64,000 nucleotides of DNA from Bugula neritina (GCA_964035545.1 OZ037767.1:4356707-4420706); one strand, 5' to 3'. Positions 47,595-64,000 are shown, numbered from the stretch's first letter. Notes: generated by a model not told the origin, from the sequence alone. Made by a program: numbers and translations.

Positions 47595-49869
47595 ATGATG
47601 ACTGCGGCAAGTAATGTTGTGTTCTCTTTAGTCTTAATCCTGCCACTTATAGCAGACAGTACAGCAGTACCTACACTAAACTATACAATTGAAATAAATA
47701 GAGAAAGATATTTGCATGAGGCTCGAAAGGATTTTCTTAGCATTGCACTTGATTGCTCTCTAATAAATTCTGAGTGGCAAACCTTTAACCCACTAAATAA
47801 AAATGTAATAGTGATGGCTAAAGCACTATCTCCAGCTATCTTGCGTCTTGGGGGAACGGCCTGTGACTATGTAATTTTCAATAACACTAACAATCAGCGT
47901 TCTTTGTATCATTTGAACACAATGTTGAAGAATGAAAGTTTAAAATCAATTCTTCATGCGAAAGACTGGGACAAACTAGTAGCTCTTTCTCGAATGGCTA
48001 ATTTGACTTTACTGTTTGATGCTAATGTAATGTTACGTGATCCTCAAGGAAACTGGGATCCAACAAATTTCATTAGCTTTTTAAAACACAATGAATACTA
48101 TAATGTGTCAAACTTGATGTTTGAGCTTGGCAATGAGCCAAACAACTACCCAGTACATTTTAATTTAACCATCTCTGCATCTCAGCTAGCTGCCGATTTT
48201 AAAACTCTGCGTGATGTCATTAGTCAGCACAGTTTTTTTAAAAAGAGCTTGATAGTGGGGGCAGATGTTGGCAACCCATACATACGAAATGGTAAGTAGG
48301 CTAGATATGATAGTTGTTAAATTGCAGTGTGTAATAGCACACATATATGACAAAGTGGTTCATTAAAGCCAAGTATGTTTGTTGAAACCTCATCACTCTT
48401 GAACATGTTGCAACAAGTTTTTTAATTTTAAATAGTTTGAGACATCGGCAATCTGTTGTGACAGCATTTGTTTTATTGACTTAGAACTACAGCTGGACCC
48501 AGCCACATATATACACGATTTCTTTGAAGATGCTCACTCTACTATTGATGCCCTCACGTGGCATCAATATTATCTCAAAGGCAGCACTGCAAAAGTTGCC
48601 GATTTTATCAATGCCACTGTTATGGAAACATTTAGAAAGCAGGTACAATTTCTATAAGTGTGTTTCATAATAAAGCTAAAACAATAGAATATTGATATTT
48701 AAGATTGATTTACATCTTATCAACTGTGTTACTTTTACATTAATTACAGTTTTATCTTTGTAACTTCAGGTCATCATTGTGAGTAAGATCATTCAAGATG
48801 TCTTGGGTGCCAATCAAACATTTCCTGTATGGATGGGCGAGACTTCTTCTGCGTACGACAGCGGCGCTAAGAACATTTCAAATCGTTATGTTGCCGGGTT
48901 TCTCTGGATGGACAAACTCGGTATATCTGCACAATACGGGTAAACATCCCCCTTTGAAAAATAAAATTGTTGAGTAGAGCTCATATCAATATGTTATGTA
49001 TATTTCTTGGTTTCGTTTTTATTGTAAAGACAACTCCCAATGTATAACTTTTCACATAATTTCCAGGTATGACATTGTGATTCGGCAAACACTTTATGGT
49101 GGCGCATACTCTTTGATTGACGAGAATATGCAACCACTTCCTGATTTCTGGCTTTCCTACCTTTTTAAGAAGTTAGTTGGCCGAAGATCGCTTGAGGTAT
49201 CCGTTACCCAAAACCCGGGAAGTATCAGAGTATATGCCAGCTGTTCCAGGTAGTGTCTCTCTCCCCCATGAGTGTGTATTATGACTAATTCTTGGGAGTT
49301 GTGGTAAACTGCAGAAAATTTGCCAACAGAATTTTTAAGATCATGAAACTACTTACACAATCAAAATCAAAACTATTCTCATCCAATTACTAGCTTTAAT
49401 TTATGTTAATCAAGCATGTTTTTGAGGTTTATCTAAAAACCTTCAATACTAGGGCTTTCGGAGGTTATAAATACAAAAAATATTTTTGTATTGTTTAACT
49501 ACAGTTTTTGGCTGTTATATGTAAAGTTGTAATTGCAAATATTAGTTTTACATTGAAACCTTGTCATTTGATAGAATTGAAGAAGGAGTCAAACCAGGTG
49601 CGGTTACTATCTACGCTATGAATCTGGACCCTACATCATCTGCTAGACTACAAGTTGCATTCAATTCTACTGGCACCATATACTTGCTGGAACCCACAGA
49701 CGGCACCCTTACTTCACCCTATGTTGATATTAACTCACAGACTATGAAGTTGACAAATGATAGTAAAATCCCCCCAATACCTCTCAAATCTCAGAATTAT
49801 TTTGAACTGAAGCCTCTAACATTTGGATTTTTTGTTCTGAATGAAGCCAAAGCTGTTGCTTGTATATAG
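47595..49869 (+). CDS. HPSE: Heparanase-like glycoside hydrolase family 79 endo-beta-glucuronidase, 5 coding exons
   Basis: Exons 47595-48291, 48485-48642, 48770-48939, 49067-49249, 49575-49869. Signal peptide, [24 protein letters not shown] (acid/base Glu), [20 protein letters not shown] (nucleophile Glu), [39 protein letters not shown]-terminal AKAVACI. Confidence 0.93.
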
Positions 49870-51100
49870 CTACAACTTTTCACTTAAATTTCAAAAAAAA
49901 GTAAGTCAAATGCCCGTTAGTGCAATCATTTGAACACGTTGAGTTACTACATAGAATAATTTCTGTTGAATTTTTAAAATATTTTAGCAAATCATGGAGA
50001 TTTTAGACAAATGTTGTTTAAAGAAATATTTTAATTAGTTTAACCAACTAATATCAAAGCCATGTTATATTAACAATCTAAGATGTGATTAAAATGTTAA
50101 AAAATTTTAGTTTTTTTCTGAAATTAAATTGGAACAAAATAAATTTAGTAGTTATACTATATTTTATATTTAATACAAATTTTAGTAGTTATAATATTAT
50201 ATTTTATATTTAATACAATTTATGTTTTCTACACAAAACACTGTTTTGATGATAAGATAGTTGATTTATTCTTTGTTCATTTATCTATTAAACATTTTGT
50301 AAAGGTTATTGGGAATTTTCCCCTCATTAATTTATTCACTGCTTTGCATAGCCATAATGATATATCTAAATTTTTTTCACGAGTTTCTTACATTTTTAGG
50401 CTTTGTAATTACTAATAAGTTGTCTTCTCTCGTGAAATATTGAGTCAAAATAAAACATGAGATTTGAAATACTGTAATGTATTATTGCAATATATTAGAT
50501 TCATATAATTTATCACTCTAGCAACTTAAATCTTGAATGTAAAAATATTTTGACTTTATTATATAATATAGACAAATGTAATATAATAGCTATAGAGCCA
50601 TATATAGATATAGTACCATCATACAGTGTATATTATGTAAGCAAAGTTACTAAAAAATATAATATTTACTTCACAAGTTCCATTATATAGAAAAAAATTG
50701 TAAGATAATAATTTCACTTGCTAGAATGATAAATGCTATATAATTGCTGAATCTGCTGATTATAAAAACCGTAATCATGCCTTGACTTTACATTTTATTA
50801 CACAAATAGTATGTTTTGTTTAACCATGGATAGCAGGTAAACAAAATAATACATATATCAAGCTAAATACATGTAAATGCATAAACGGAACAAGTCTATA
50901 AATTCAATGATTCAAATAAAAAGTTATGTCTGAACTTACAAACCAAATATTATACTAAGCTTATGAAAATGGCTAACTTAATTTTAAATGTGTACCTTAT
51001 GTATCTCTGTGTATAAATTAAATGTAAATTAGCATAGCATAATCTGACTGTGTACTGTAAAAATTTTGCAGGCGCAAAAGTTTCACCTACTCTAACGTAT

Positions 51101-54100
51101 TTAGACCTGCGTACTTCGAGCACTTCTAACAGTACCTCTGTCCATTGTTGCAGCCATAGATGGATGCGAGTAGGTGTCAATCTTGTCTATCGAATCAACA
51201 TTATTGTAAGATATATAGGTACCTGACCCAGGGTGTAGGTGATTATGACTGTAATACGTCGTAGGTATTCGTATTGGAACAGGTAGCGTGTGAACATCGT
51301 AAGATCTTACTGATCTTTGGGGTGTAACTATTTGGTCGGGAGTTGCTACCCCATTGTCTGTTGAATCGTTACTAATTCTACCGAGCAGACGTTCATCTAC
51401 AGTCAGTTGGTCGTCTGAATACATAGTCTGCTTATACTCATCGGGGTAAGAAATGGCGCCGTGCGTATGACACGATGAATTTTTTAATATTTGTGCAGCT
51501 ATTATTGAAAGAATCATAGCTAATCCAAAGAAGCCACAGTTATAAAAGGTCAGTTGAGTTGATATTCGAATGCTAGCGAGTCCACCCGTTACTTGAACAG
51601 TTTCAATGGCCACCTGCTCGTACATATTCGAACTAGTTGGATTTTCAAGAACTGCATTCAAAGCATCAACGTACTTGACCCAATAGATGCCGGTAAGCAA
51701 GGTCTGTATGATACAAGTGGCGTATATAAAAGCTAGAACTATGAAAGTGGCTCTCATTGGCTTGCATTTTCTATTCAGTTTACCAAAACAAAGTAACAGA
51801 ATTATCGAGAGTAGACTAAGCACTCCAGCTACACCAATGGCCACCAGAATCACTAGTTTAGTTGATGAATACTCAAACTTCTTAGCGAACTCTTGCTGGG
51901 TCTTATCCGGGAAATTCAAGTCCAACATCGTCTGGTTGAGAGATGTGAAGGTGAAAGATTGTTTGAAGCATTTACCGTGCTTGTCATACTTTAGGCTCAG
52001 TAGGGCAGGGTTCAAAGGTAGAGGTTTTGGGTCAAAGTCACATTCAGTTTCATCAGAAAAATCTTTGCATTGAAAGTTTGCATATTCTTTCTTCTCACAT
52101 CTAAATAAAGCATATATCATTATTTATCTGTATAAAATTATTACTCATCATGATTTGATAGAATTATTGTACACAAGTTGGTTTATTCAATATCTATAGA
52201 GCCATTCTTTTTCTGAAACTTCTGCATGTCTTGGAGTTTTAAACGTGTGTAATAAATCAAATTTATACTGTTTGGACATGTACAATTGGAAGTATGACTA
52301 AACAACAACTGATTTACAGTTCAATAATGTCTCCACACAATCTAGTTGCTATAGTAATCTATTTTAACAAACATATAATACTATCTTATATAACTATGTT
52401 TCTCAAATGCTTACACATAGGTAGACTCTATCAGTTGACCATCATTGCATTTTGAGTAGAACTCAGATGCTGGATCAGGACAGTCATATTCATCCGAGAG
52501 ATCAAAGCAGTCAGCTTTCGCATCACATCTTTCTCCGATGACACAAGATCCATCACCACATCTAAGATAATTTAAATAATTTTTGTAATATTTTTATCAT
52601 ATGTCTCAGCACTATAATCAAATGTCCATAACCATATATCTCACAGTTTTTCAATACTACAACCGTATTCTTTCAATGCTATTATTATACATCCCATAAT
52701 TTTTCAGATGATGAAATTGATATCTAGTAAAAAATCAAACTTCCTTTCACAACCATAATTTATTTTATTAAATACAAACACGTCAATACCATGAGCAGAT
52801 ATACAGTATTTGGAAAAGCGAGAGAGTATATCAGTTTCCAACCTGAGAAAGCCAGCTCTACCACAGCAGTTCTGCTCGTCCTCATACATGCCACAGTCAT
52901 TGATGCCGTTGCACACTCTGGCTTTAGGGATGCATATAGGCTTGTTGGCACTGCACTGTATCATACCTGGACCACAGGGCTGTTCTGGCTGGGGGCAGTT
53001 CAACTCATCGTGGCCAGTGGGACAGTCAATTGTACCATCACATTGCTACAACAGATTGTATGTCACATTAAACTACAACATTGTATATCGCATTGTTACA
53101 CTATCATACAATCACATTACTGATACATATTGTATGTTACATTGTAACAATATCATATAATCACATTGCTACAACATTATATATCACCTTGTTACAACAT
53201 TGTACATTACATTGTTACAATATTAGATGCTACATTGTTACAACACTGCATTAGATGTTATGCAGATTGCAATATGAAATTGCATAGCTGGATGTGACCC
53301 TAAATTGCTGCATTATACTTATAGACCTGCAATCACGTGTGAAGAGCTGTTGGATGCCAATAATTAATGTAGACTTGTTTCAGCTTAGGTTTACAATTTT
53401 TATTTTTGGTTACTTTGCTTCAAAGTTAGGACAATTTTTCATGCTAAACACTTGGTTAGAACAGGGGCTACTCAAAAAGCTGTAACTTATCACCTATAAC
53501 TCAGTTATCTCAGACTGGCCGTGCATAGTGCAGGCAAGTAGTGGGAATATGAATTCAATGCTAGCAATTCTACATTTAAAAGAAGCTGAAAATACTGCCA
53601 ATGTATGCAAACAACACTTGCCGCAATCTTTGACAAAAAATCATAAAGTTTTGTATAATTATTCACAGCTACAATTATCTGTGACAGGTTAATTAGACAA
53701 AAAGTAAAACATACAACTTAGAACTAACTCTGTTATTGGTGATGTATCTTAAACATACAATAGAAAATTAATTATTATGTCTACATGTATATTCAGCGTA
53801 TTTAATATGCTTTCTTTGGCATGTTCAAGCTATTAGTATTCAGCCATCAAATAAAATAATCATACAGCTTATAGTACTGACAGCTTGAGTGTCAAAATAA
53901 TTGGGGATGACTGAACATTTAAATTGTTACAAGCCATTTATGTTGGAATGTAGATCAATAATGACTGCAAGTACAATGAAAGACATCTTAATTTGCTCTT
54001 TTCTGGTGATATTACTACAACAGCTATTACCAATAGTGCAGGAGAAGATAATTACTAAGGTTAACAATATTGCTCAACTTTCATGCATTGAGTTTTCATT

Positions 54101-57100
54101 ACAGAAACTGGAATTTGTTCTCCTCAAAGTAAGTTCATGACTAGCTTTACTGTGCAAAGCTCATAATAGTACTTATAATAATCAAATGAAAATAAACAAT
54201 TTAAAATACTCTATATTATAGTTTTTATCACTATCAGGAGAATATGGTAGATTATTAATAATTTACTACATGTGCACACATCTTCTATATACTTTCAGTA
54301 AAATTATATTTTATGTTACAGCAAGACTGTCATTGTAATTGGAATATTAAAATAAGTTGTTGAACATAAAGCAACAGATATGCTGTATGTTATAGTTGAT
54401 CTATCAGCTGAATGACTATTTTTAAAGTTAATATGAGCAAAATGAAAAACATTGGGTTGAAGCTAGTGCAATGGCTGAATGTATATTATGCAAGTTGTTA
54501 ATAAAAGAATGGACATAAATTCTTCCACCATGCTACTAAGCCATGAAACATCAACCAAACCAACCAATGAGAATGAGTAAATTCTACTAACCTGGGCAGC
54601 CTTTATGCATCCATTTATTGGTTTCCTGTAGGAGAGGGCCCTCGGAGACTTAGGCTCAGATCCTCGGAGAGTTCTCATGGCCACTATGGGGCATTGGTAT
54701 TGTGCATAGGACGCCTTGCACACTGGCGCTACCCACGGTGTCTTGAACAGAGCTATCTTTGGACCTTGTACCGGTATTTTGCAATGAGACAAGAGGCCAT
54801 ATCTACAAGGTAGTAGAATTAAACAGTAAACATATTAGGAGTTGTCTGTACAACAATGTAACTTAAAAAGCAATGAAACTGGTTGAGCTGTAGTTAGGTC
54901 ATTGCTTTCTAGAGGTATTATAGCATTGACCTTTGGCAAAGGCAGCTTTCTTATTTCCTAAATTTACTGGAGCAGGAAACAGCCAGAATGCAATGAAACA
55001 GGTCACCTGCAGTGGCAATTCACTAATTAATACTCTTAACGGTAGTTATATAATTACAGCTTTAGGCTACAGACAGCAAACAACAATGGTGAAAATTCCA
55101 TCTATTCTGTTTGCTGTTGCAGCAGACAGTACCCTGGCAGACAACCTGTCTAGGCATGGTCATTGAGTTCATGACTCATCTCCTGGGAGTCTGTCCAGTT
55201 ACTACTCTGTCTTCATGTATTCATAAGTTATAAAGACAATGGCAACAAAGTTGTGTGAATTGTTTTTATAAACAACAATAAATTTAGTTTACTTTTTTAT
55301 AAATAATATATGTCTTCTAATTTTTATGCAGATTATAAAATCTAAATAAATTCAACTTTTTTTAGCAATATATTCTTATTTTTGACGCTTTTACAATAAA
55401 TATTTTTTGTAAAATGCATATAATGAATTATAAGTACCTGGAAGTCATAAATCTAACATCTTCTCCGCCATTGTCAATGTACTTGTACAAAGTGCCGTCA
55501 TCATTGGGTATAGTCTTGTTGAACATAACATAGTCCAAGTGTTTAGAGCCAAGACGAGGGTACTTGAGATCTAAGGTGGCATAGGGGTTGGTAGAGATCC
55601 CTGCCCAGTTATCCAGCCACAAAGATAAACCTCCCATGGCAACACCAGCCAACTGAAATAAAATATTTTTAGACATTAATGACTTTCATCATTTTACTTA
55701 AGACAGCAGTGTAATGGCCAATAAATATAAAAGAAAAATACTGTTGGCATTATTTCAAAAGGTAAGCTAATGTTTTTGGCAAAGCTCATAATGAAAATGT
55801 CACTTTTTTTCTTGCGTTGTTTGCAAACCAAATAAATCTCACTCAAAATTTCTGACTTCTCAAAAAAGATGGCACCATTTATTCAATCAATTGCCTACTT
55901 TTTATGTCAGCAGCCAGCCTTCGGAGACAAACTCTGCTGCCATAGAAACTAAACTTCAAACAAAAAAACTTAAAATGATAAGAGGCCTGGGCAGACAAAA
56001 ACTTAGTGAATTTTTTATTTAGGAGTTATCCTTACAATGTTGATACTATGCACCTGTGAACCATTCCTCACAGCTCTTCTCAATAGTGACAGAAATAATG
56101 ATTATCTTATCTAATCTGTTGGGATTAGGACTTACGGTTGTGAAGAGAAGTAGTACTACAATAGTACATATCTTGCTGCAGCAGTATCTACCATGGTGGT
56201 AGTAACAGTTGCTATAGCGACCAGACGACAGTCCGGTTTCTTTGAGACCCACAGGTGAGGGTATGGAGGTAGAGTGACTGGAGTCGTAGTCCATCCTACC
56301 TGAGGCCAGTGACATTGCTCTGAGAAGGGCAGGTGATGGCCCAGCTAGTCTCTTAGGTAGTCTGTAGTCTAAATAATATATTGGAGAATAAATTAATTAC
56401 CATAGAGTATAGACATAACATTATGCATGCAGTTGTTTACAACATTGTTTTGACATGATTTACACATGCATCTTGCTTGTGATTTAAAATCCTCAACTGA
56501 TTTCTTTGTTACAAACAATTATTGAATAGATAATAAAGTTGTACTGCACTTGACATGTTTTTAATAAATAAAAATAGGCATTTAGCATGCAAATTTTACA
56601 TCCTAAACTGGTTAGTCTATATCAATTCAGTGTTTCGGAATTAGTCAATGCCAACATTAGGTTGACATCAAAATCCTGATAAATCTAAATTCTATGGTTT
56701 TTAAAATCAATTTTTGCTAGTAATAAGTACTTAGCTTCATTATAGTTATTGCAATGTAGTAAAATTTAGTAGTTTTAAACTAATAATGTTAATAGGCTAT
56801 AGGATGACTTTAACAATGTATTAATTAACTCTAGACCAATTGGTTGCATTCAAACTGCTATAAAAATACACTCCAGGAAGCAAAAACTCTTTAACTCAAT
56901 TTATTTTTATTCATAGAGACAGTAAAACTGAGAAATTGATCTCCATGCCAGGACCCCCTGTATCACGTCAACAAGAAATTTGATTCAAAACTCAATGCGG
57001 TGAATAAGATGAACAATTTATTTAGTCTCAGGTTTCAAACCTGATAGCACTTTGAGATGTGGTTATTGTCGCCTAAAATTTAACAAGTATATATGTTACA

Positions 57101-58679
57101 GGCTAACATGAAAACTGCTAGGAAGACATGTTAATTAAGTGTTATTTTAAACTTTACTCCCGTCTATTTAAAGAGCACTTCTGGTGTGTGAGCAATAGAA
57201 GTGTTTTAGGGCTTATTTCTAGCCTTTTAGTTTGTTTCAATAGAATACAAGTTCTTTTCTCCACGCTCTAAAAAACTGCTTTAGCCACTGATAGTTGGTG
57301 CTAGGAACTAATATAAATTATCTCAAAGTTATAGGGACAAATTTATTCAAATATATTGACAATAAATTAGGAGAAATGTACTGAAAACCTTTCAAACTTT
57401 ATTTAGCAAGAACAACTTAAGTGCAACAGCTAACACATAAGACCCATATATAGCTGACTTTAGTGTATATGCTATTAATAAATTATGAAATTATTCTAAG
57501 CAATGTTAGACTGGAAGGTTTTTCCCTTAAATTCACTCAACAGAGCAACATAATATTTCCATAGATGTAGATATGAGAATCACCTAACCACAACTCCTAC
57601 ATTGATTTAACTACCTACGATCTACTTGACTTCACCTGAGCTTTGAGATTAACACAAATACAGTTCAACTGCATAAAACTACGGCAAATATTATTTACTT
57701 TTAAGAAGACAATAAAGTGGAGAAAAGCTGGGCTTATGTGGTTAAAGCTTTGGTAAGAAGTCTTGGTCGCCCTTTGAGCATAGCAAACATACTGGGTCTA
57801 CTACTTGGTAAGGAGCTCACTGTAATACTTAATCCAACTATTAATTTGTTTATATGCCAGAGCTATTCTTGTATACCTCTTCATTCATAATAAACTGCCT
57901 TAAGAACTCAGCAACGAGTGGAGCACTTTAGCCTCAGTGAAGTGCCTTGCACTAACTAAGAAATATGCTATAAACAAAGCAGGAAAAAGCACGTCCACTG
58001 ATAAAATACTCTGCTACAAGGACAGCAGGTTTTAGGGCTAGAAAACTTGTAAGGTATTTATTACTGTCTTAGAACCATAAAATTACATAACAGTTAATAG
58101 CAAATATACTATCTATATTCTATATTTCCCATATCTCTATATTAAAGGTTGACAACTTTGAATCTTGAGATTGAAAAAGAATTGTGTGCAAAAAATTATT
58201 TCCGTCAAAACTTGTCAGACTTAATATTTATCCTCGAAGATGATTTCAAGTGACATAAGATACTGCAGATTACCAAGGAGTAATCAGCAGTAATAGTATG
58301 ACAAGTGATGTGATAGGACCATTTCAAGAGGTACATTTATGGCAAGGTTTGTAAGGAGTGGATGGAGATATGCACAAGTGAGTGGATAAAACAGGGAACC
58401 CTTGGACATGTGGAGAAGTTACGTGTACTCCTTACTGCTATACAGGTATACATATAAAGGAGATAAAAATAAATTCAGAGGGTGTATAGATGCAAGCTTT
58501 CAAGTTTCTGTACTAAGTGAATTATAGCAGGTATTTATAACACATGGAGTTATCTGTTCAATTGAACCCTGAAAACTGAACTAATGAGAAAACTAAATTT
58601 CTGCACTGAATGAACGAAGGAGGGCTGCCATTGCTGCCAAGACAAAAGGACGGGAATTGTGCATTGACTTACCATCCAT
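51101..58679 (-). CDS. Four-TM claudin/PMP22-superfamily-like membrane protein with four LDL-receptor class A modules in extracellular loop 1 and a C-terminal PDZ-binding motif, ~671 aa
   Basis: Exons 58673-58679 (ATG GAT G), 56136-56368, 55438-55652, 54592-54802, 52843-53045, 52415-52561, 51101-52100 join in one frame (2016 nt). TM1 ICTIVVLLLFTTLAGVAMGGLSLWL-DNW; YGLLSHC; LDLa cores CDGTIDCPTGHDELNC, CNGINDCGMYEDEQNC, CDAKADCFDLSDEYDC, CKDFSDETEC; GKCF; three more hydrophobic helices; tail ends STQV. Confidence 0.82.
53038..53250. repeat. Degenerate ~23-bp minisatellite (CACATTGTTACAACATTGTATAT-like) at a splice acceptor
   Basis: acattg(c/t)tacaa recurs about 8 times; atcacattgctacaaca is present at both 53038 and 53160. 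Confidence 0.8.
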
Positions 58680-61600
58680 GGCTCTGAAAAAAAGAACAAA
58701 CATATTTTTTCATCTATTATAATTTCAACGATTAATGACTGCATAATTATGTTAATAGATGTCTTGAATAAATAGGCTTCGTGTCTAAAATTAGGCTTAT
58801 AACTTCAACTTCCACATACTATAATAGATACATTAATTTAGAAGCAACGTCTTTATTCTTGGTATAAATAATTACCTATCTGGCATGAAACTAATTTTAA
58901 TTGTGCATATAAATGAGAAATAACCTGCTGTACCATGCATGCTGCAGCACTGGTGCAATTATAATAACTACATTTGTCTGACACTACGCCTGTCTAGGTG
59001 TGGTCTTGCTCAATTATCATCTTTGAAAAGTACAAGAATTTCAGTAGAGAACAGAGACAGTTCTAATCTAACATGAGATATCTCAGTCCGACGAATACAC
59101 CGTTCTCCCTCGTGATCCAAAGATACCCTTCTTGCACACTGAACCGTAGCTTGCATTATTCAACTTTCAAATCAACTGCTGCACTGCAGCTAAGGCTAGT
59201 GGTTGTTCAGAGACTTATGTAAGGAGATCCAGCAGTTTAGATTTCAAAGTGTAAATTTCTACGAGCTATTTTGCTTGGTGCATTATAAATGCCAACATCC
59301 TAGATAACTTAATCTGATGATAAATTCAATAAGCTTTACAAAGTTAGGGCTTACTAGATGCTAATTCAAAGTTTTCAAGGAACAGCTATGCTGCTGAAAA
59401 CCAACAATTTGGGGTATTTATTAGTAATTATTTACTATAAGCTTTCTAATAGCTTTATGTCCCTGAGTGGTGCTTGAAGCTAGCTGGATGTGGACTAAGT
59501 AAACTGCTGGTGATTAAATTATTAGAGCAAATCAAGAACTTACAGGATGTGCACCTAATTGTAAACAATATTCCAATGCAGCAAAATGCTATCATTAACC
59601 AGAATATTAATTATGATCAATATCATACAATCTGCTGACCATTTCTCTCCATTTAAACCTACGAGTGTGTGGAGCTAGAACAATAGCATTATCAGATCCT
59701 TACACTGCTAATTAATGTGTTTATCAGGTAAATAATTCCTTAAATCCAATTATTAGAAGGTCAATGCTGACTACGAACAGCAAACAAGCGCCATTTCCCC
59801 TCAAATGTTAACAGCCAACGGATAGAGACATTAACACTCTCAGTGTGTCCGTTAGTTCTCCTGTACAGATGTTATGCTCATCATTATCACACCTATTTAT
59901 GCAATTTTGCTTTAGGAGAGCAATTCTTAGTAGCAAAAGGTGAACTTTGGATAACGAAAGCAGGTTTGCCTATTCGTGACAGGAAAATTCAACTCACCCA
60001 GGCTTGAAGTCATATTGTAGAAGCCTAATACAAGTGATCAACTAGTTTCTATGCTATACTGATGGTAAATAAGGTCTGTTTGGTAATAAAACAGCACAAT
60101 GGTGTAGTGTTTGCTGATGAATGAAGATAACGGTTTGTTATCTGAGAAAAATAAATGTGGAGATTATTGCTAAAAGCAGGAGCCAATGAAATGCACAAAG
60201 CAAACATGGCGAGAGTTTATCAGGGTAAACACTTGACCTTGTTCCTTGACTTGAACTTCCCCTCGTCATCTGACATTCTCTAATGAATTCAAACCAGGTC
60301 GTGTAATCTTTATGTACATTACACAACAGAATTATTATTCAATTTTTGGAGAAATATTTAATTTGATAGTTACTAGGTTGAATTTTGGTCAAGGAAAATA
60401 ACGATTGCACCATCTCCAAAGGAAGTCCACTTCAAAAGTTTAGGTAGTGAGCTACGACATGTTTAAAACATAAAAATTAAAGTTGGGTTCAGTGGGGTTT
60501 CATGAATATATCAATCGAATAGTCTTTATCTGAGAATAGACCGTAAAACAACTGTAATTTTGTTCAAATTCACCTTTAAAGCCCTAATAACTTCAATAAC
60601 CATATATATACTTTGTATGTAATTGGTTGAGCTTTTTCTCACGCTAAAGCTACCTTCTGTTTTTAGGCTGTGCTAAACAAGCTAATTTTGGCAAGAAGAA
60701 TAGCTTGCAGTCTCCAAATAGCTCTTCAGCACTTGGAGTGCGAGATTGCTCTCATTTGTGAAGCCAGTTTTCCCACTGCATGTCACTTTTTGTTGCGTTA
60801 TCTACAATTCTAAAGTCCATAAAATAACATCTCAAAATAATTAGTAGAGTTTCTCAACTTATAGGAAAGATTTCTCATGCTTGTATTTTAGCAACTCTCT
60901 AGTGATAGTATCTTACAAACTCCTCAACCTTTTGATGTGAAATTCGTCAATTGAAATGTTTGTATATCAGCGAAGATCTGCTGAAGCTAATCAACACTTT
61001 CTTAGAACATACTCTTTCACATCAACCTGAATTGTTTAGAACTCAACATGAAGGTTGAAATAGTCTGTGATACACACGTGTCTTGCCAAGTTTTCTCTTA
61101 CCAACATCATTTAATTGAAACACAATTTCGATTCCTATTAATACCCAATATTGCACAACTACAGCACCCCCCCCCCCCCCTCTATACCTCACAATTCCAT
61201 TTCTCATGAAATTTCATAGGTTACGAGAAAGACTTGGACCCGTTTTAGGGTTATGTATCCTAAGTGTGTATAAAAACAAACTAGCCCATGACCCATGAGG
61301 TAAATCTGGTATACTATGTTACAAGCTGAGGTTTTGGACCCGAAGCTTAGTGTAGGTTGTCCCTGTAATATGTTGCTCTGAGTAATTTGGGGAGACAATT
61401 TCATGTGCATATCATTAATAACTTGGGTTAACACGTGTAGAAAAACTCTTCAAATGTAGTTGTGTCAATTCCAGAGTAATATTGATATTCAATTTTCAGT
61501 CAGTCATTTTATTGTACTTCTGTAAGGTCAATAACTAATCAATTAGACATACAATATGCAGGAATTAAATTGGTAGCAGCAGTATTAAAACAACAAAAGA

Positions 61601-64000
61601 ATGAGATCTAAAGGAAGAACCTGTTGACATGGACAGCAGTTACAAAGGCAACATCTAGTATAAGTTCCAGATTGATTTATTTCTATTGGCAAACAAAGAA
61701 AATAATGCACCTGAGAAGGTGTCAGCTAACTTTGACATGCTGACTTTAACAAACCAATAGAATGCTGCCTGGGCCTGTGATTGTAGATTAGAGATGAAAA
61801 ATATTAAAAGGGCTTAGAAATTGTAATTTGTGATTGCACAGTTATTAGTTGCAGTGCTAAAAAGTTTCCCAGCCTGAGCTCTTTTATTTTCACATAAATT
61901 TAATTTTCAGGCATATTATGCTTATAATCAACCCCATCTATTACAGAGCTATTTGCAGGTGTTCAGGCTATGGTAGACCTATCCAAGTTCTGGCTAGTTT
62001 TGGATGGTCAACAGAAAGACACTAATTGTAATTTTCTCTGCTTGGGCACAGCAGAGTAGCTTAGTATAGCAGTGTTTTCAAGAGCTTCTAAAACCCCTGT
62101 AGGTGGCCAAAGCCCTCCATAGTTAAAGGTGGTACATTTTCTTGCCCCACCATATGTGGGTGAAATATGGAAAACAGAACTAGCATCTTGTAGGTGAGGT
62201 TGCACAACACAGGTGCCTAATTTATGTCAGAAAAATTAGCACACTGGTTTATGTTGTCAGTGCATTGTGATAATTTGATGAGAGTTAAAATTAGCATATT
62301 GTGGTGGGGGCTAGTTGGTACTGCAATAACCCACAATTCCACATAATTACAATAATAGTTCCTAAATTACCCTTAAAATATATAGCCTTGGGTGGCTTGG
62401 GGTTTTTCTTACAACTCCTAGTAAAATTAGTCAACTTCAAGCTCAAGAAATATCTTATAACATAGCAATGGCCACCCTTCATAATCGGGATTATATTGGA
62501 TTAAAAACAACGTAACAAATTCTACATGTGCATAATAAAAAATGTCTACTAGTAGACGTGACTATGTGGCTATTGTATTATAGTAGGATTGTATCATCTT
62601 CAAGCAGGCTGTTAGGAGAGAGTTTCAAGAAGCAGATGGTTATCTCGAGGTCAATTTACACTTCCTGTACCATGTTTATTTTAAACTTAGTTCTACCATT
62701 TGCATCACAAATATACAGTAGCTTTATCTTTGAAATTGCTACTAATCTAGATCACTGATTCAACGTTTTGGTGTGAAATTCATAATAAGTACTAAGCAGG
62801 AGATAGTTTATTCACTCTTGTATCTTGAAGATCTTGTCTGCTACAGCATAGACTATTTATTCAACAAACCAACCACTAGTGAATAACCAAACCAAAGGAA
62901 AAGGTTCTTGAACTAAAAATATTTGTGTTGAAAGAGAAAACATACTTGAATCACATTGTTGTTTTTCCACCTGCATTTAATTGAGCCTTTGCTAAGTTGC
63001 AATATGAATAAATATTGATGGGCCAGAAGATTTTGCATAAATTTATAGTCACACAGTTTTAACTCCATTAAGAAAGAATGTAAAATAAAAATGCAATCTA
63101 ATAAATATTAAAAGTAGTTGCTGGATTCTTGTATAATAATTACGCAAGCTCATTAGCTGAGTATTTCAAGCAACACCTTTGCTTCAATGTAGTAATCAGT
63201 CATTTATTTAACCTACCAGTGGAAGCCATGGAAGTCAATAAAGGCGGTTTATTAAATGACTATGTTATAAATTACAGCCTCTTTTCTGTAATTAACTGCT
63301 ATAATAAATACGGCAGGTAATGATGATGGCAAAGTAACATTATTATACCCAGGGATTTAATCAACCAAGCCTTACAAAAATGTCACACTGACACTAACCA
63401 TATATTTTAAATAAAACTGATGAAAAGCAACAGGAGAGATAACTTCCCAACTATATATTTCAAAGAGACCAATACTAAACTCATAATGAAAGTTAAATAC
63501 ACATTTATTCCTTACACTAGCATGCCTATTTGCACCATTTACCATAATGGTTTTTTTATTTTATTTACAAAAGCCTTCCAAAGAAGAGATATTGAGAAGT
63601 TTTTGCCTTGGGTCTTCAATTTTGTGACAGTGACACCAACTTTTGATAGCATCCGATTATTAGTTACTTTAGTATCACATTGATAGGCTTGTATGGTATA
63701 AATAGAGTATGAGAGATTTGAGCATAGAAAGCTGTCTTTTTAAGAGTTTGCTTTCTAGTAAAGCGAAAAAGCAGTCTCGTCAAAAATTAAAGAATATTTG
63801 AATCAAATCTGAATTGATAACTGTGATGTCTACAGAAACGTTATTTGCAGACATCAGAGATCTATATAAAACATTTAAAAACGCATCTAAACTGTCATTA
63901 TATCTTAGATAAGGTTAGGCCCATTAGAGTATAGTTTAGTCATTGCATAGCCTGTGAGATATTTTATTCGGTTTCAGTTCATCGCACATTTCAAATGAAG

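Follow-up and report, generated by a model that had tools for sequence, protein, structure and literature searches.

An expressed bryozoan gene for a predicted four-pass membrane protein with an LDLa cassette in its first extracellular loop

In a stretch of 64,000 nucleotides of the Bugula neritina genome (GCA_964035545.1, OZ037767.1:4356707-4420706; henceforth the window, in whose coordinates positions are given unless another sequence is named), six coding exons with canonical GT..AG borders, read from the raw sequence, lie on the minus strand between 51101 and 56368. Together they encode a protein with four hydrophobic spans that carries a cassette of four LDLa modules in the first of its two extracellular loops. 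The coding sum of 1953 bases (651 amino acids, aa) starts at the ATG at 56315 and ends at the stop codon at 51103-51101, with three codons split by introns. The features of the gene are listed below (TM1 to TM4, transmembrane spans; ECL1 and ECL2, first and second extracellular loops; ECL1a and ECL1b, parts of ECL1 before and after the cassette).

Exon A: 56368-56136, minus strand; 5' untranslated region (UTR) 56368-56316, followed by 60 codons of coding sequence from the ATG at 56315
Exon A, protein part: cytosolic N-terminus with the Cys cluster YCCSKIC, and first half of TM1 (56171-56136)
Exon B: 55652-55438, minus strand; second half of TM1 (55652-55614), DNW, conserved ECL1a, NKT sequon
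Exon C: 54802-54592, minus strand; YGLLSHC (Cys codon 54783-54781), linker, N-terminal half of LDLa1 from 54720
Exon D: 53045-52843, minus strand; C-terminal half of LDLa1 (53045-52995), LDLa2 (52976-52866), start of LDLa3 (52865-52843)
Exon E: 52561-52415, minus strand; remaining LDLa3 (52561-52480), N-terminal part of the degenerate LDLa4 (52479-52415)
Exon F, coding part: 52100-51101, minus strand; end of LDLa4 (52100-52040), ECL1b with GKCF and an NQT sequon (52039-51857)
Exon F, membrane part: TM2 (51856-51782), basic loop (51781-51752), TM3 (51751-51677)
Exon F, remainder: ECL2 without Cys (51676-51554), TM4 (51553-51485), tail of 127 aa (51484-51104)
Non-coding first exon, beyond the window: G000:C3:4424101-4424166 (around 1501-1566 of L028), running into a GTAAGT donor

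A hydrophilic N-terminus of 48 residues with the Cys cluster leads into TM1, which runs across the A/B junction and is followed by D-N-W. ECL1 opens with ~55-60 conserved residues that include the N-K-T sequon, continues through R-Y-G-L-L-S-H-C and a 20-residue linker into the four LDLa modules, and after the cassette closes with a 61-residue segment carrying G-K-C-F and the N-Q-T sequon. TM2, a basic loop of 10 residues and TM3 come next, and a Cys-free loop of 41 residues after TM3 leads to TM4 and the 127-residue tail, which ends in S-T-Q-V in the 651-aa Bugula model. From TM1 onward this is the succession of parts (TM1, W, YGLLSHC, four LDLa modules, GKCF, TM2, loop, TM3, ECL2, TM4 and a tail ending in T-Q-V) that an earlier note on this DNA had read from the sequence. 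Two orthologs share the Met at 56315 as their start, and one of these, from a third species (species 3), has an in-frame stop eight codons upstream of it, so the start codon is placed there. At the other end the 3' UTR extends below 51101 and past 50801.

The exon chain is documented by transcripts. RNA contigs of four runs (X1, X4, X8 and X12) were placed on window positions 50801-56700, and all five junctions are found base-exact in spliced contigs of X1, X4 and X8, which belong to one organism (organism A) and come from three studies; the B/C and C/D junctions occur also in X12, an oligo-dT biofilm metatranscriptome. RNA contigs carry the junctions 56136|55652 and 55438|54802, six allelic letters lie between the two sides of the E/F junction (52415|52100), and on the exon A side contigs extend to 56377 and 56324. 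A single X4 contig of 2716 nt covers all six exons. Depth over the introns is nil or negligible, so that these contigs represent spliced RNA and not DNA. Exons A to F are thus one expressed gene, and the splice chain that was to be checked by RNA sequencing, with the TM1 exons and the exons for LDLa and the other three spans in the same gene, is borne out.

The same 2716-nt contig has 66 extra letters at its 5' end. The first 30 of them have no match within the 64-kb window and correspond, with one mismatch, to G000:C3:4424101-4424130, i.e. ~67395 in window coordinates and ~3.4 kb past the window end. Given this match and the GTAAGT donor that follows it, the gene has a non-coding first exon, and together with the exon A acceptor at 56369/56368 this implies a first intron of ~11 kb that covers 56369-64000 and beyond. 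The earlier note had set the 5' limit of the gene at 58679; among the RNA contigs placed on 50801-56700 the transcript uses no exon there, and the spliced contig joins exon A directly to the non-coding exon outside the window.

In GenBank the gene is split into two hypothetical proteins (P0032 and P0012), neither of which holds all four membrane spans. A cluster look-up with the last-exon open reading frame (ORF) led to KAF6029896.1 (hypothetical protein EB796_011795, Bugula neritina, 524 aa), which has an invented MSYC start followed by exons C-F (51101-54802), and a search with exon B led to EB796_011794 (144 aa), in which exons A-B have been given both a spurious start and a spurious tail (54592-56368). 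That these two adjacent entries of the deposited Bugula neritina annotation are separate genes, and the tetraspan an artefact of joining them, is very improbable, since contigs of four runs, the oligo-dT metatranscriptome among them, carry the B|C junction 55438|54802, a single contig holds all six exons, the deposited models require the invented start and an out-of-frame tail (KMLDL), and the exons share one reading frame and one succession both in the Watersipora RefSeq model described below and in species 3. The public annotation of this gene can be corrected now.

The entire architecture is present in a RefSeq 'uncharacterized protein' of Watersipora subatra (P0029, 645 aa, starting M-S-L), which is 65% identical to the 524-aa Bugula model over 98% of that query; Bugula and Watersipora are cheilostome bryozoans of different superfamilies. 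All six exons of the third species lie on ENA metagenome contigs (L011 and L012). Exon-level relatives add roughly ten further species-level sequences, with last-exon ORFs (P0002-P0009) at 48-65% identity and exon-B homologs (P0033-P0040) at 67-84%; the exon-B ORFs overall come from ~10 species and span 67-99%. The parts other than LDLa gave no match outside this group, phmmer of the last exon having covered 1.84 billion representatives, and word-indexed searches of 5.8 billion clusters returned only last-exon and exon-B ORFs of related species together with LDLa-only matches. Within the 216-Mb Bugula genome the gene is single-copy, all other matches being to LDLa only. It is recorded so far only in bryozoans, and the two named species are cheilostomes.

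Two genomic contigs (L001 and L002, one found in a Logan run and the other in a JGI metagenome), which were compared with 49177-53218, share 89% DNA identity with the window over 3.9 kb and encode a nearly identical protein. This is compatible with a diverged haplotype or with a cryptic sibling species within the Bugula neritina complex. Between exons D-F and these 11%-diverged contigs there are 38 synonymous and 1 non-synonymous codon differences over 447 codons, indicating strong purifying selection. Conservation is also apparent at single positions. The C-terminus is [ST]-[QP]-V in 12/12 aligned sequences, so that the PDZ-type ending noticed in Bugula holds throughout; the Cys of GKCF (C359 of the Watersipora ortholog) and the Cys following TM2 and TM4 are invariant in the eight aligned sequences, and the Cys of YGLLSHC (C135 of the ortholog) is present in all three species for which that exon is available. 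ECL1a, with the motif DNWAGISTNPY ... YVMFNKTIPND, has 18 invariant and 15 nearly invariant columns across ten species, and in ECL2 the stretch V-x-x-E-T-x-x-V-T-G-G-x-A-x-I-x-I-S is conserved.

For full-length searches and folds the Watersipora ortholog P0029 served as proxy, the window exons being searched singly. Hydropathy gives four spans in P0029 (43-71, 394-425, 432-456 and 498-525) with positive-inside flanks, in agreement with the four-span topology of the earlier note. Basic residues lie at the cytosolic ends of the spans, with the sequons and the LDLa modules in ECL1, which puts both termini in the cytosol; ECL1 is longer than ECL2, which has ~41 residues and no Cys. AlphaFold2 was run on P0029 with an 18-row alignment and again with the ten-species depth of ECL1a, locus fragments of exons A and C that MAFFT had scattered having been dropped; these alignments were shallow, with an effective number of sequences (Neff) of 1.2-2.0, and the mean predicted local distance difference test score (pLDDT) was 49.9 with the first and 51.4 with the second. 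In the second model TM1 (pLDDT 65-72) and TM2-TM4 (74-89) are packed into one bundle, and a hairpin (351-354/359-362) that carries C359 is followed by two helices (371-391) running into TM2, at pLDDT 64-84.

The LDLa modules are well supported by profiles. Against a Pfam gathering cut-off of 24.1 bits for PF00057 (Ldl_recept_a), exon D scores 48 bits with two stretches, exon E 29 bits and the ortholog P0029 54.6 bits with four stretches, so that the LDLa part of the proposed Pfam check gave the expected outcome on the exons and the ortholog; compared with the PDB, the family profile finds LRP2 and VLDLR structures with E down to 1e-35. LDLa1 has six Cys and a full acidic cage, an intron inside the module and a conserved insertion of ~20 residues between Cys2 and Cys3. 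In LDLa2, also with six Cys, one acidic Ca2+ position is replaced (N in Bugula, H in Watersipora), while LDLa3 is canonical. LDLa4 keeps C-x-D-x-S-D-E-x-x-C, is longer by four residues between Cys4 and Cys5, and is without Cys1 and Cys3, which in canonical LDLa modules pair with each other. The acidic positions of the Ca2+ cage are retained in LDLa1, 3 and 4. The count of four modules in the earlier note therefore stands, with two of them, LDLa1 by its insertion and LDLa4 by its missing Cys pair, departing from the regular form.

The modules of the ortholog account for 6+6+6+4 extracellular Cys, and exactly two more, C135 and C359, flank the cassette, one on either side. The position of the cassette in ECL1 between two Cys, as had been put forward, is thus supported, these being the only extracellular Cys outside the LDLa modules. 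Because the lone Cys are even in number and conserved, a C135-C359 disulfide would be the simplest reading.

On balance we favour the explanation that the locus holds one expressed, single-copy bryozoan gene for a 651-aa four-pass protein of the plasma membrane, with cytosolic termini and an LDLa cassette in ECL1, whose role would be that of a PDZ-anchored, ligand-binding protein. The disulfide between the lone Cys would clamp the base of the cassette, which would then have been inserted in a loop belonging to a single folded tetraspan domain. By analogy with other LDLa receptors, the modules may bind a protein ligand bearing basic residues in a Ca2+-dependent manner. On the inner side, the juxtamembrane Cys might tie the protein to the membrane face, and the conserved C-terminal [ST]-x-V, of the class I PDZ type, could link it to PDZ scaffolds; the two tethers together would place the protein at a cell-cell contact or in a receptor cluster. 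In an ESMFold2 split test residues 40-140 (TM1 and ECL1a) docked on residues 330-530 (ECL1b and TM2-4) with an ipSAE of 0.59 (0.02 for the best of three controls), a prediction in keeping with a single folded domain that the cassette interrupts.

Several points weigh against this explanation. The docking is rated by the tool as weak support, with pLDDT of 46-47 for the partners and at least 53% of contacts common to the runs. The pLDDT falls below 50 in ECL1a and over most of the cassette, and in both AlphaFold2 models over most of residues 72-219, and the folds and full-length searches stand on the Watersipora proxy and not on the joined Bugula protein. In view of the substitution in LDLa2 and the insertion in LDLa1, ligand binding need not extend to all four modules, the putative C135-C359 disulfide is drawn solely from the even number of Cys and their conservation, and the proposed function comes from domain knowledge alone, by analogy.

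What kind of tetraspan carries the cassette is a separate question. The earlier note had assigned the protein to the claudin fold, and this assignment found no backing in sequence or profile searches and no discriminating support in structure searches. With E up to 10, no Pfam family of the claudin clan matched the window exons, P0029 or eight family members. A SUR7 match on the last exon of the window (E 0.015) is taken as noise, being absent from the ortholog and from the eight aligned members. Genome scans with PF00822 and PF13903 matched other Bugula loci and not this gene, among them at least four genuine Claudin_2-like genes with [PD]-[YH]-W-L after TM1 and G-L-W-x-x-C, whose first exons (coordinates in G000) can serve as a set of claudin references from Bugula itself:

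C1:34431947-34432309 (L025), first exon of a Claudin_2-like gene
C2:23071377-23071517 (L022), first exon of a Claudin_2-like gene
C1:24496735-24496905 (L024), first exon of a Claudin_2-like gene
C1:23101510-23101677 (L026), first exon of a Claudin_2-like gene

The second Cys of these exons lies 13-22 residues after G-L-W-x-x-C.

With hhalign against the four exons, ECL1a/TM1 (the N-terminal half) and the TM half reached probabilities of 0.7-1.5%, the N-terminal half by itself 1-1.5%, a weak negative given the shallow alignments. Profile searches of the PDB with the TM half and with ECL1a were empty. The proposal that a claudin-fold match would appear once the LDLa block was removed was taken up with the two halves separately, and neither matched, which does not refute the fold. 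Nor did the proposed combination of AlphaFold and Foldseek yield, on the four-helix bundle, the five-stranded extracellular beta-sheet of the claudin fold, the ectodomain staying below pLDDT 50 and Foldseek finding nothing in the PDB below E 0.6. Searches of the ESM Atlas, both by shape and with the Atlas's own model, had no discriminating match, the shape search returning LDLa proteins. Structural alignment of the second, better AlphaFold2 model with VIA-align, a tool for which Z below ~13 is common among helical bundles, gave the following chains:

6z0c_A, designed maquette, Z 16.2
9c3c_n, chain of the dystrophin-glycoprotein complex, which we take to be sarcospan, Z 15.6
8dr8_A, LRRC8A, Z 13.3
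8oyv_B, designed claudin fold, Z 13.1, 165/179 aligned
3jbr_E, Cav gamma1, Z 12.8, 136/138 aligned, root mean square deviation 2.9
6vd7_A, pannexin, Z 12.8
9faj_L, GARLH4, Z 12.4
9bra_s, synaptophysin, Z 12.4
8k7t_B, chain B of the Fc-epsilon-RI complex, Z 12.2
6qkc_I and 8c1p_E, TARPs, Z 11.3

The predicted four-helix core thus matches claudin-fold, sarcospan, MARVEL, MS4A and pannexin/LRRC8 chains about equally, and no family is singled out.

One reading of these results, to which we give close to an even chance, is that the core forms a new tetraspan family of bryozoans, without relation to claudins. The protein would then be best seen as an LDLa receptor with a novel four-pass anchor and a novel beta-rich ectodomain, and the likeness of GLLxxC and DNW to claudin motifs would be convergent or due to chance. 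This reading agrees with the searches, in which neither the core nor ECL1a had a relative outside the family among 1.8 billion representatives, 5.8 billion clusters, the PDB and Pfam, and with structure comparisons that favour no family; moreover, the ectodomain without LDLa comprises ~145 residues, ~3x a claudin ECL1, and has invariant motifs of its own. A missing sequence signal is, however, common among diverged families of the claudin clan, the alignments behind the searches were shallow (the same Neff of 1.2-2.0), and this reading has to accept the coincidence of several independent claudin-like features, namely the order of loop sizes, the distribution of Cys, the spacing of motifs and the hairpin and helix before TM2.

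Those features are what speaks for a true but very diverged member of the claudin/PMP22/EMP/calcium-channel-gamma superfamily, a four-helix bundle with a beta-sheet in the extracellular loops and with the LDLa cassette inserted in the beta3-beta4 turn between the signature Cys, a reading that we regard as possible and hold tentatively. Members of this superfamily (PF00822, PF13903), including the gamma subunits known as TARPs, likewise have four TM spans, both ends in the cytosol and an ECL1 much longer than ECL2; they share with the bryozoan protein a Trp at the exit of TM1, G-L-x-x-x-C, a second Cys in ECL1, Cys after TM2 and TM4 and a long tail with a PDZ-type ending. Stargazin ends in T-T-P-V, and the Watersipora protein, ending in S-T-P-V, is similar. 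In the claudin ECL1 signature, W...G-L-W-x-x-C-x(8-10)-C, the counterparts of the first elements are conserved here as D-N-W, directly after TM1 where the Bugula Claudin_2-like genes have [PD]-[YH]-W, and as G-L-L-x-x-C, with the spacing of G-L-W-x-x-C in those genes; the second Cys follows only after the cassette. Two non-LDLa Cys in ECL1 and none in ECL2, invariant juxtamembrane Cys after TM2 and TM4, and a hairpin that bears the second Cys and gives way to helices ahead of TM2, an arrangement resembling the claudin succession beta3-beta4-extracellular helix-TM2, point the same way, and the claudin-fold chains 3jbr_E, 8oyv_B and 9faj_L align over nearly their full length. The short inner loop, long TM3 and short Cys-free ECL2 are also of the claudin/PMP22/gamma-subunit type, with the alignment periodicity suggesting an amphipathic, helical extension of TM3 and then two beta-strands around an invariant G-G.

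Unlike claudins, on the other hand, the protein has no detectable sequence or profile similarity to the superfamily: Pfam scans that find other Bugula claudins miss this gene, hhalign stays at 1-1.5%, and the Z of 12-13 lies within the tool's helical-bundle noise and is equalled or beaten by sarcospan, LRRC8, pannexin, synaptophysin and a maquette. The ECL1 Cys are ~224 residues apart versus 8-10 in claudins, an extra conserved segment of ~60 residues stands between TM1 and GLL, making the distance from Trp to GLL ~58 residues versus ~20, and in ECL2, where two strands are probable from the alignment, AlphaFold2 draws a helix with low confidence (pLDDT ~61). Among known four-pass superfamilies the core topology looks most like the claudin/PMP22/gamma-subunit type, a predicted likeness and not homology, and the support that loop-size order, Cys distribution, the TM1-exit Trp, G-L-x-x-x-C, hairpin and helix, juxtamembrane Cys and PDZ-type ending lend to a claudin-like core is circumstantial.

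Two other superfamilies were compared and set aside. Tetraspanins (PF00335) have a small ECL1 and a large ECL2 with CCG, whereas the ECL2 here has ~41 residues and no Cys, and Pfam gave no match; connexins, innexins and pannexins have Cys pairs in both loops, absent from this ECL2, and their structural Z of 12-13 is not above that of other bundles.

The cassette itself has clear relatives. Modules 1-3, with six Cys and the acidic D-x-S-D-E cage, are like the LDLa repeats of LDLR, VLDLR, LRP2 and LDLRAD3 and give strong matches in Pfam and the PDB; unlike in LDLR-type receptors, their place is within an outer loop of a protein with several spans and not on a single-pass receptor, a protease or the N-terminus of a G protein-coupled receptor. 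A 'degenerin mec-10-like' protein of the crinoid Anneissia japonica (P0030; PF00057 and PF00858) also carries LDLa on a multi-pass membrane protein, so that this combination is not unique to the bryozoan gene, although degenerins are a two-pass channel family and the similarity to the query is confined to LDLa (E 5.6e-4). Neto and LEV-10 are single-pass auxiliary proteins with CUB and LDLa domains that organise ligand-gated channels and bind PDZ scaffolds; in contrast to the bryozoan protein they have CUB domains and a single span, without a tetraspan core. In the literature searched for an architecture of a tetraspan or claudin with LDLa no report was found, consistent with the earlier note's view that it is uncharacterised. 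The novelty lies in an LDLa receptor whose tetraspan anchor is novel and possibly claudin-like, and for which an uncharacterised Watersipora RefSeq entry already exists.

By analogy with TARPs or Neto, a channel-accessory role is possible for such a protein. Carried further, this would make it a tetraspan of the claudin/TARP fold that acquired an LDLa cassette in ECL1 and, anchored through its PDZ ligand, organises a cell junction or a cluster of ligand-gated channels in bryozoans, which we consider unlikely; if it were true, one polypeptide would unite a claudin-fold core and an LDLa ectodomain, two known modules of channel-accessory and junction proteins. To return to the explanation that we favour, a PDZ-anchored, ligand-binding tetraspan, its meaning would depend on the core. 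If the core is claudin-like, this would show that a claudin ECL1 tolerates a large insertion, and barrier or accessory tetraspans would be linked to receptor-type ligand binding; we know of no earlier case of a whole ligand-binding cassette between the signature Cys of a claudin ECL1. If it is not claudin-like, the gene would represent a receptor family confined to bryozoans, in which both the four-pass anchor and the conserved ectodomain are new. To our knowledge, almost no membrane proteins of bryozoans have been studied functionally, and the wider impact is moderate.

Some minor observations concern repeats. L023 holds a long tandem repeat at 838-1733 (G000:C1, around 34436626-34437521), whose unit of nine codons reads …NTYRELSLC… in one frame; the Claudin_2 match there is false, comes from the repeat and has many stops. 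In the intron between exons C and D, TGTAACAATGT-like units make up a degenerate, AT-rich repeat (53050-53320), and 21-letter pieces there and at 52581-52601 match a very deep RNA contig of 693 nt from X4, most likely a low-complexity chance match.

On the 3' side of the gene, an RNA contig of 4916 nt from run X8 goes ~2.6 kb beyond 50801, and the 3' UTR may be long and approach the convergent neighbouring gene. An ORF of 234 aa lies on the plus strand at 47595-48299, convergent with the tetraspan-LDLa gene. In species 3 (L005 and L006) the same place is taken by a called gene with a match to Glyco_hydro_79n (heparanase-like), which is likewise convergent with the tetraspan-LDLa gene, pointing to conserved microsynteny between the position of the 234-aa ORF and this gene.

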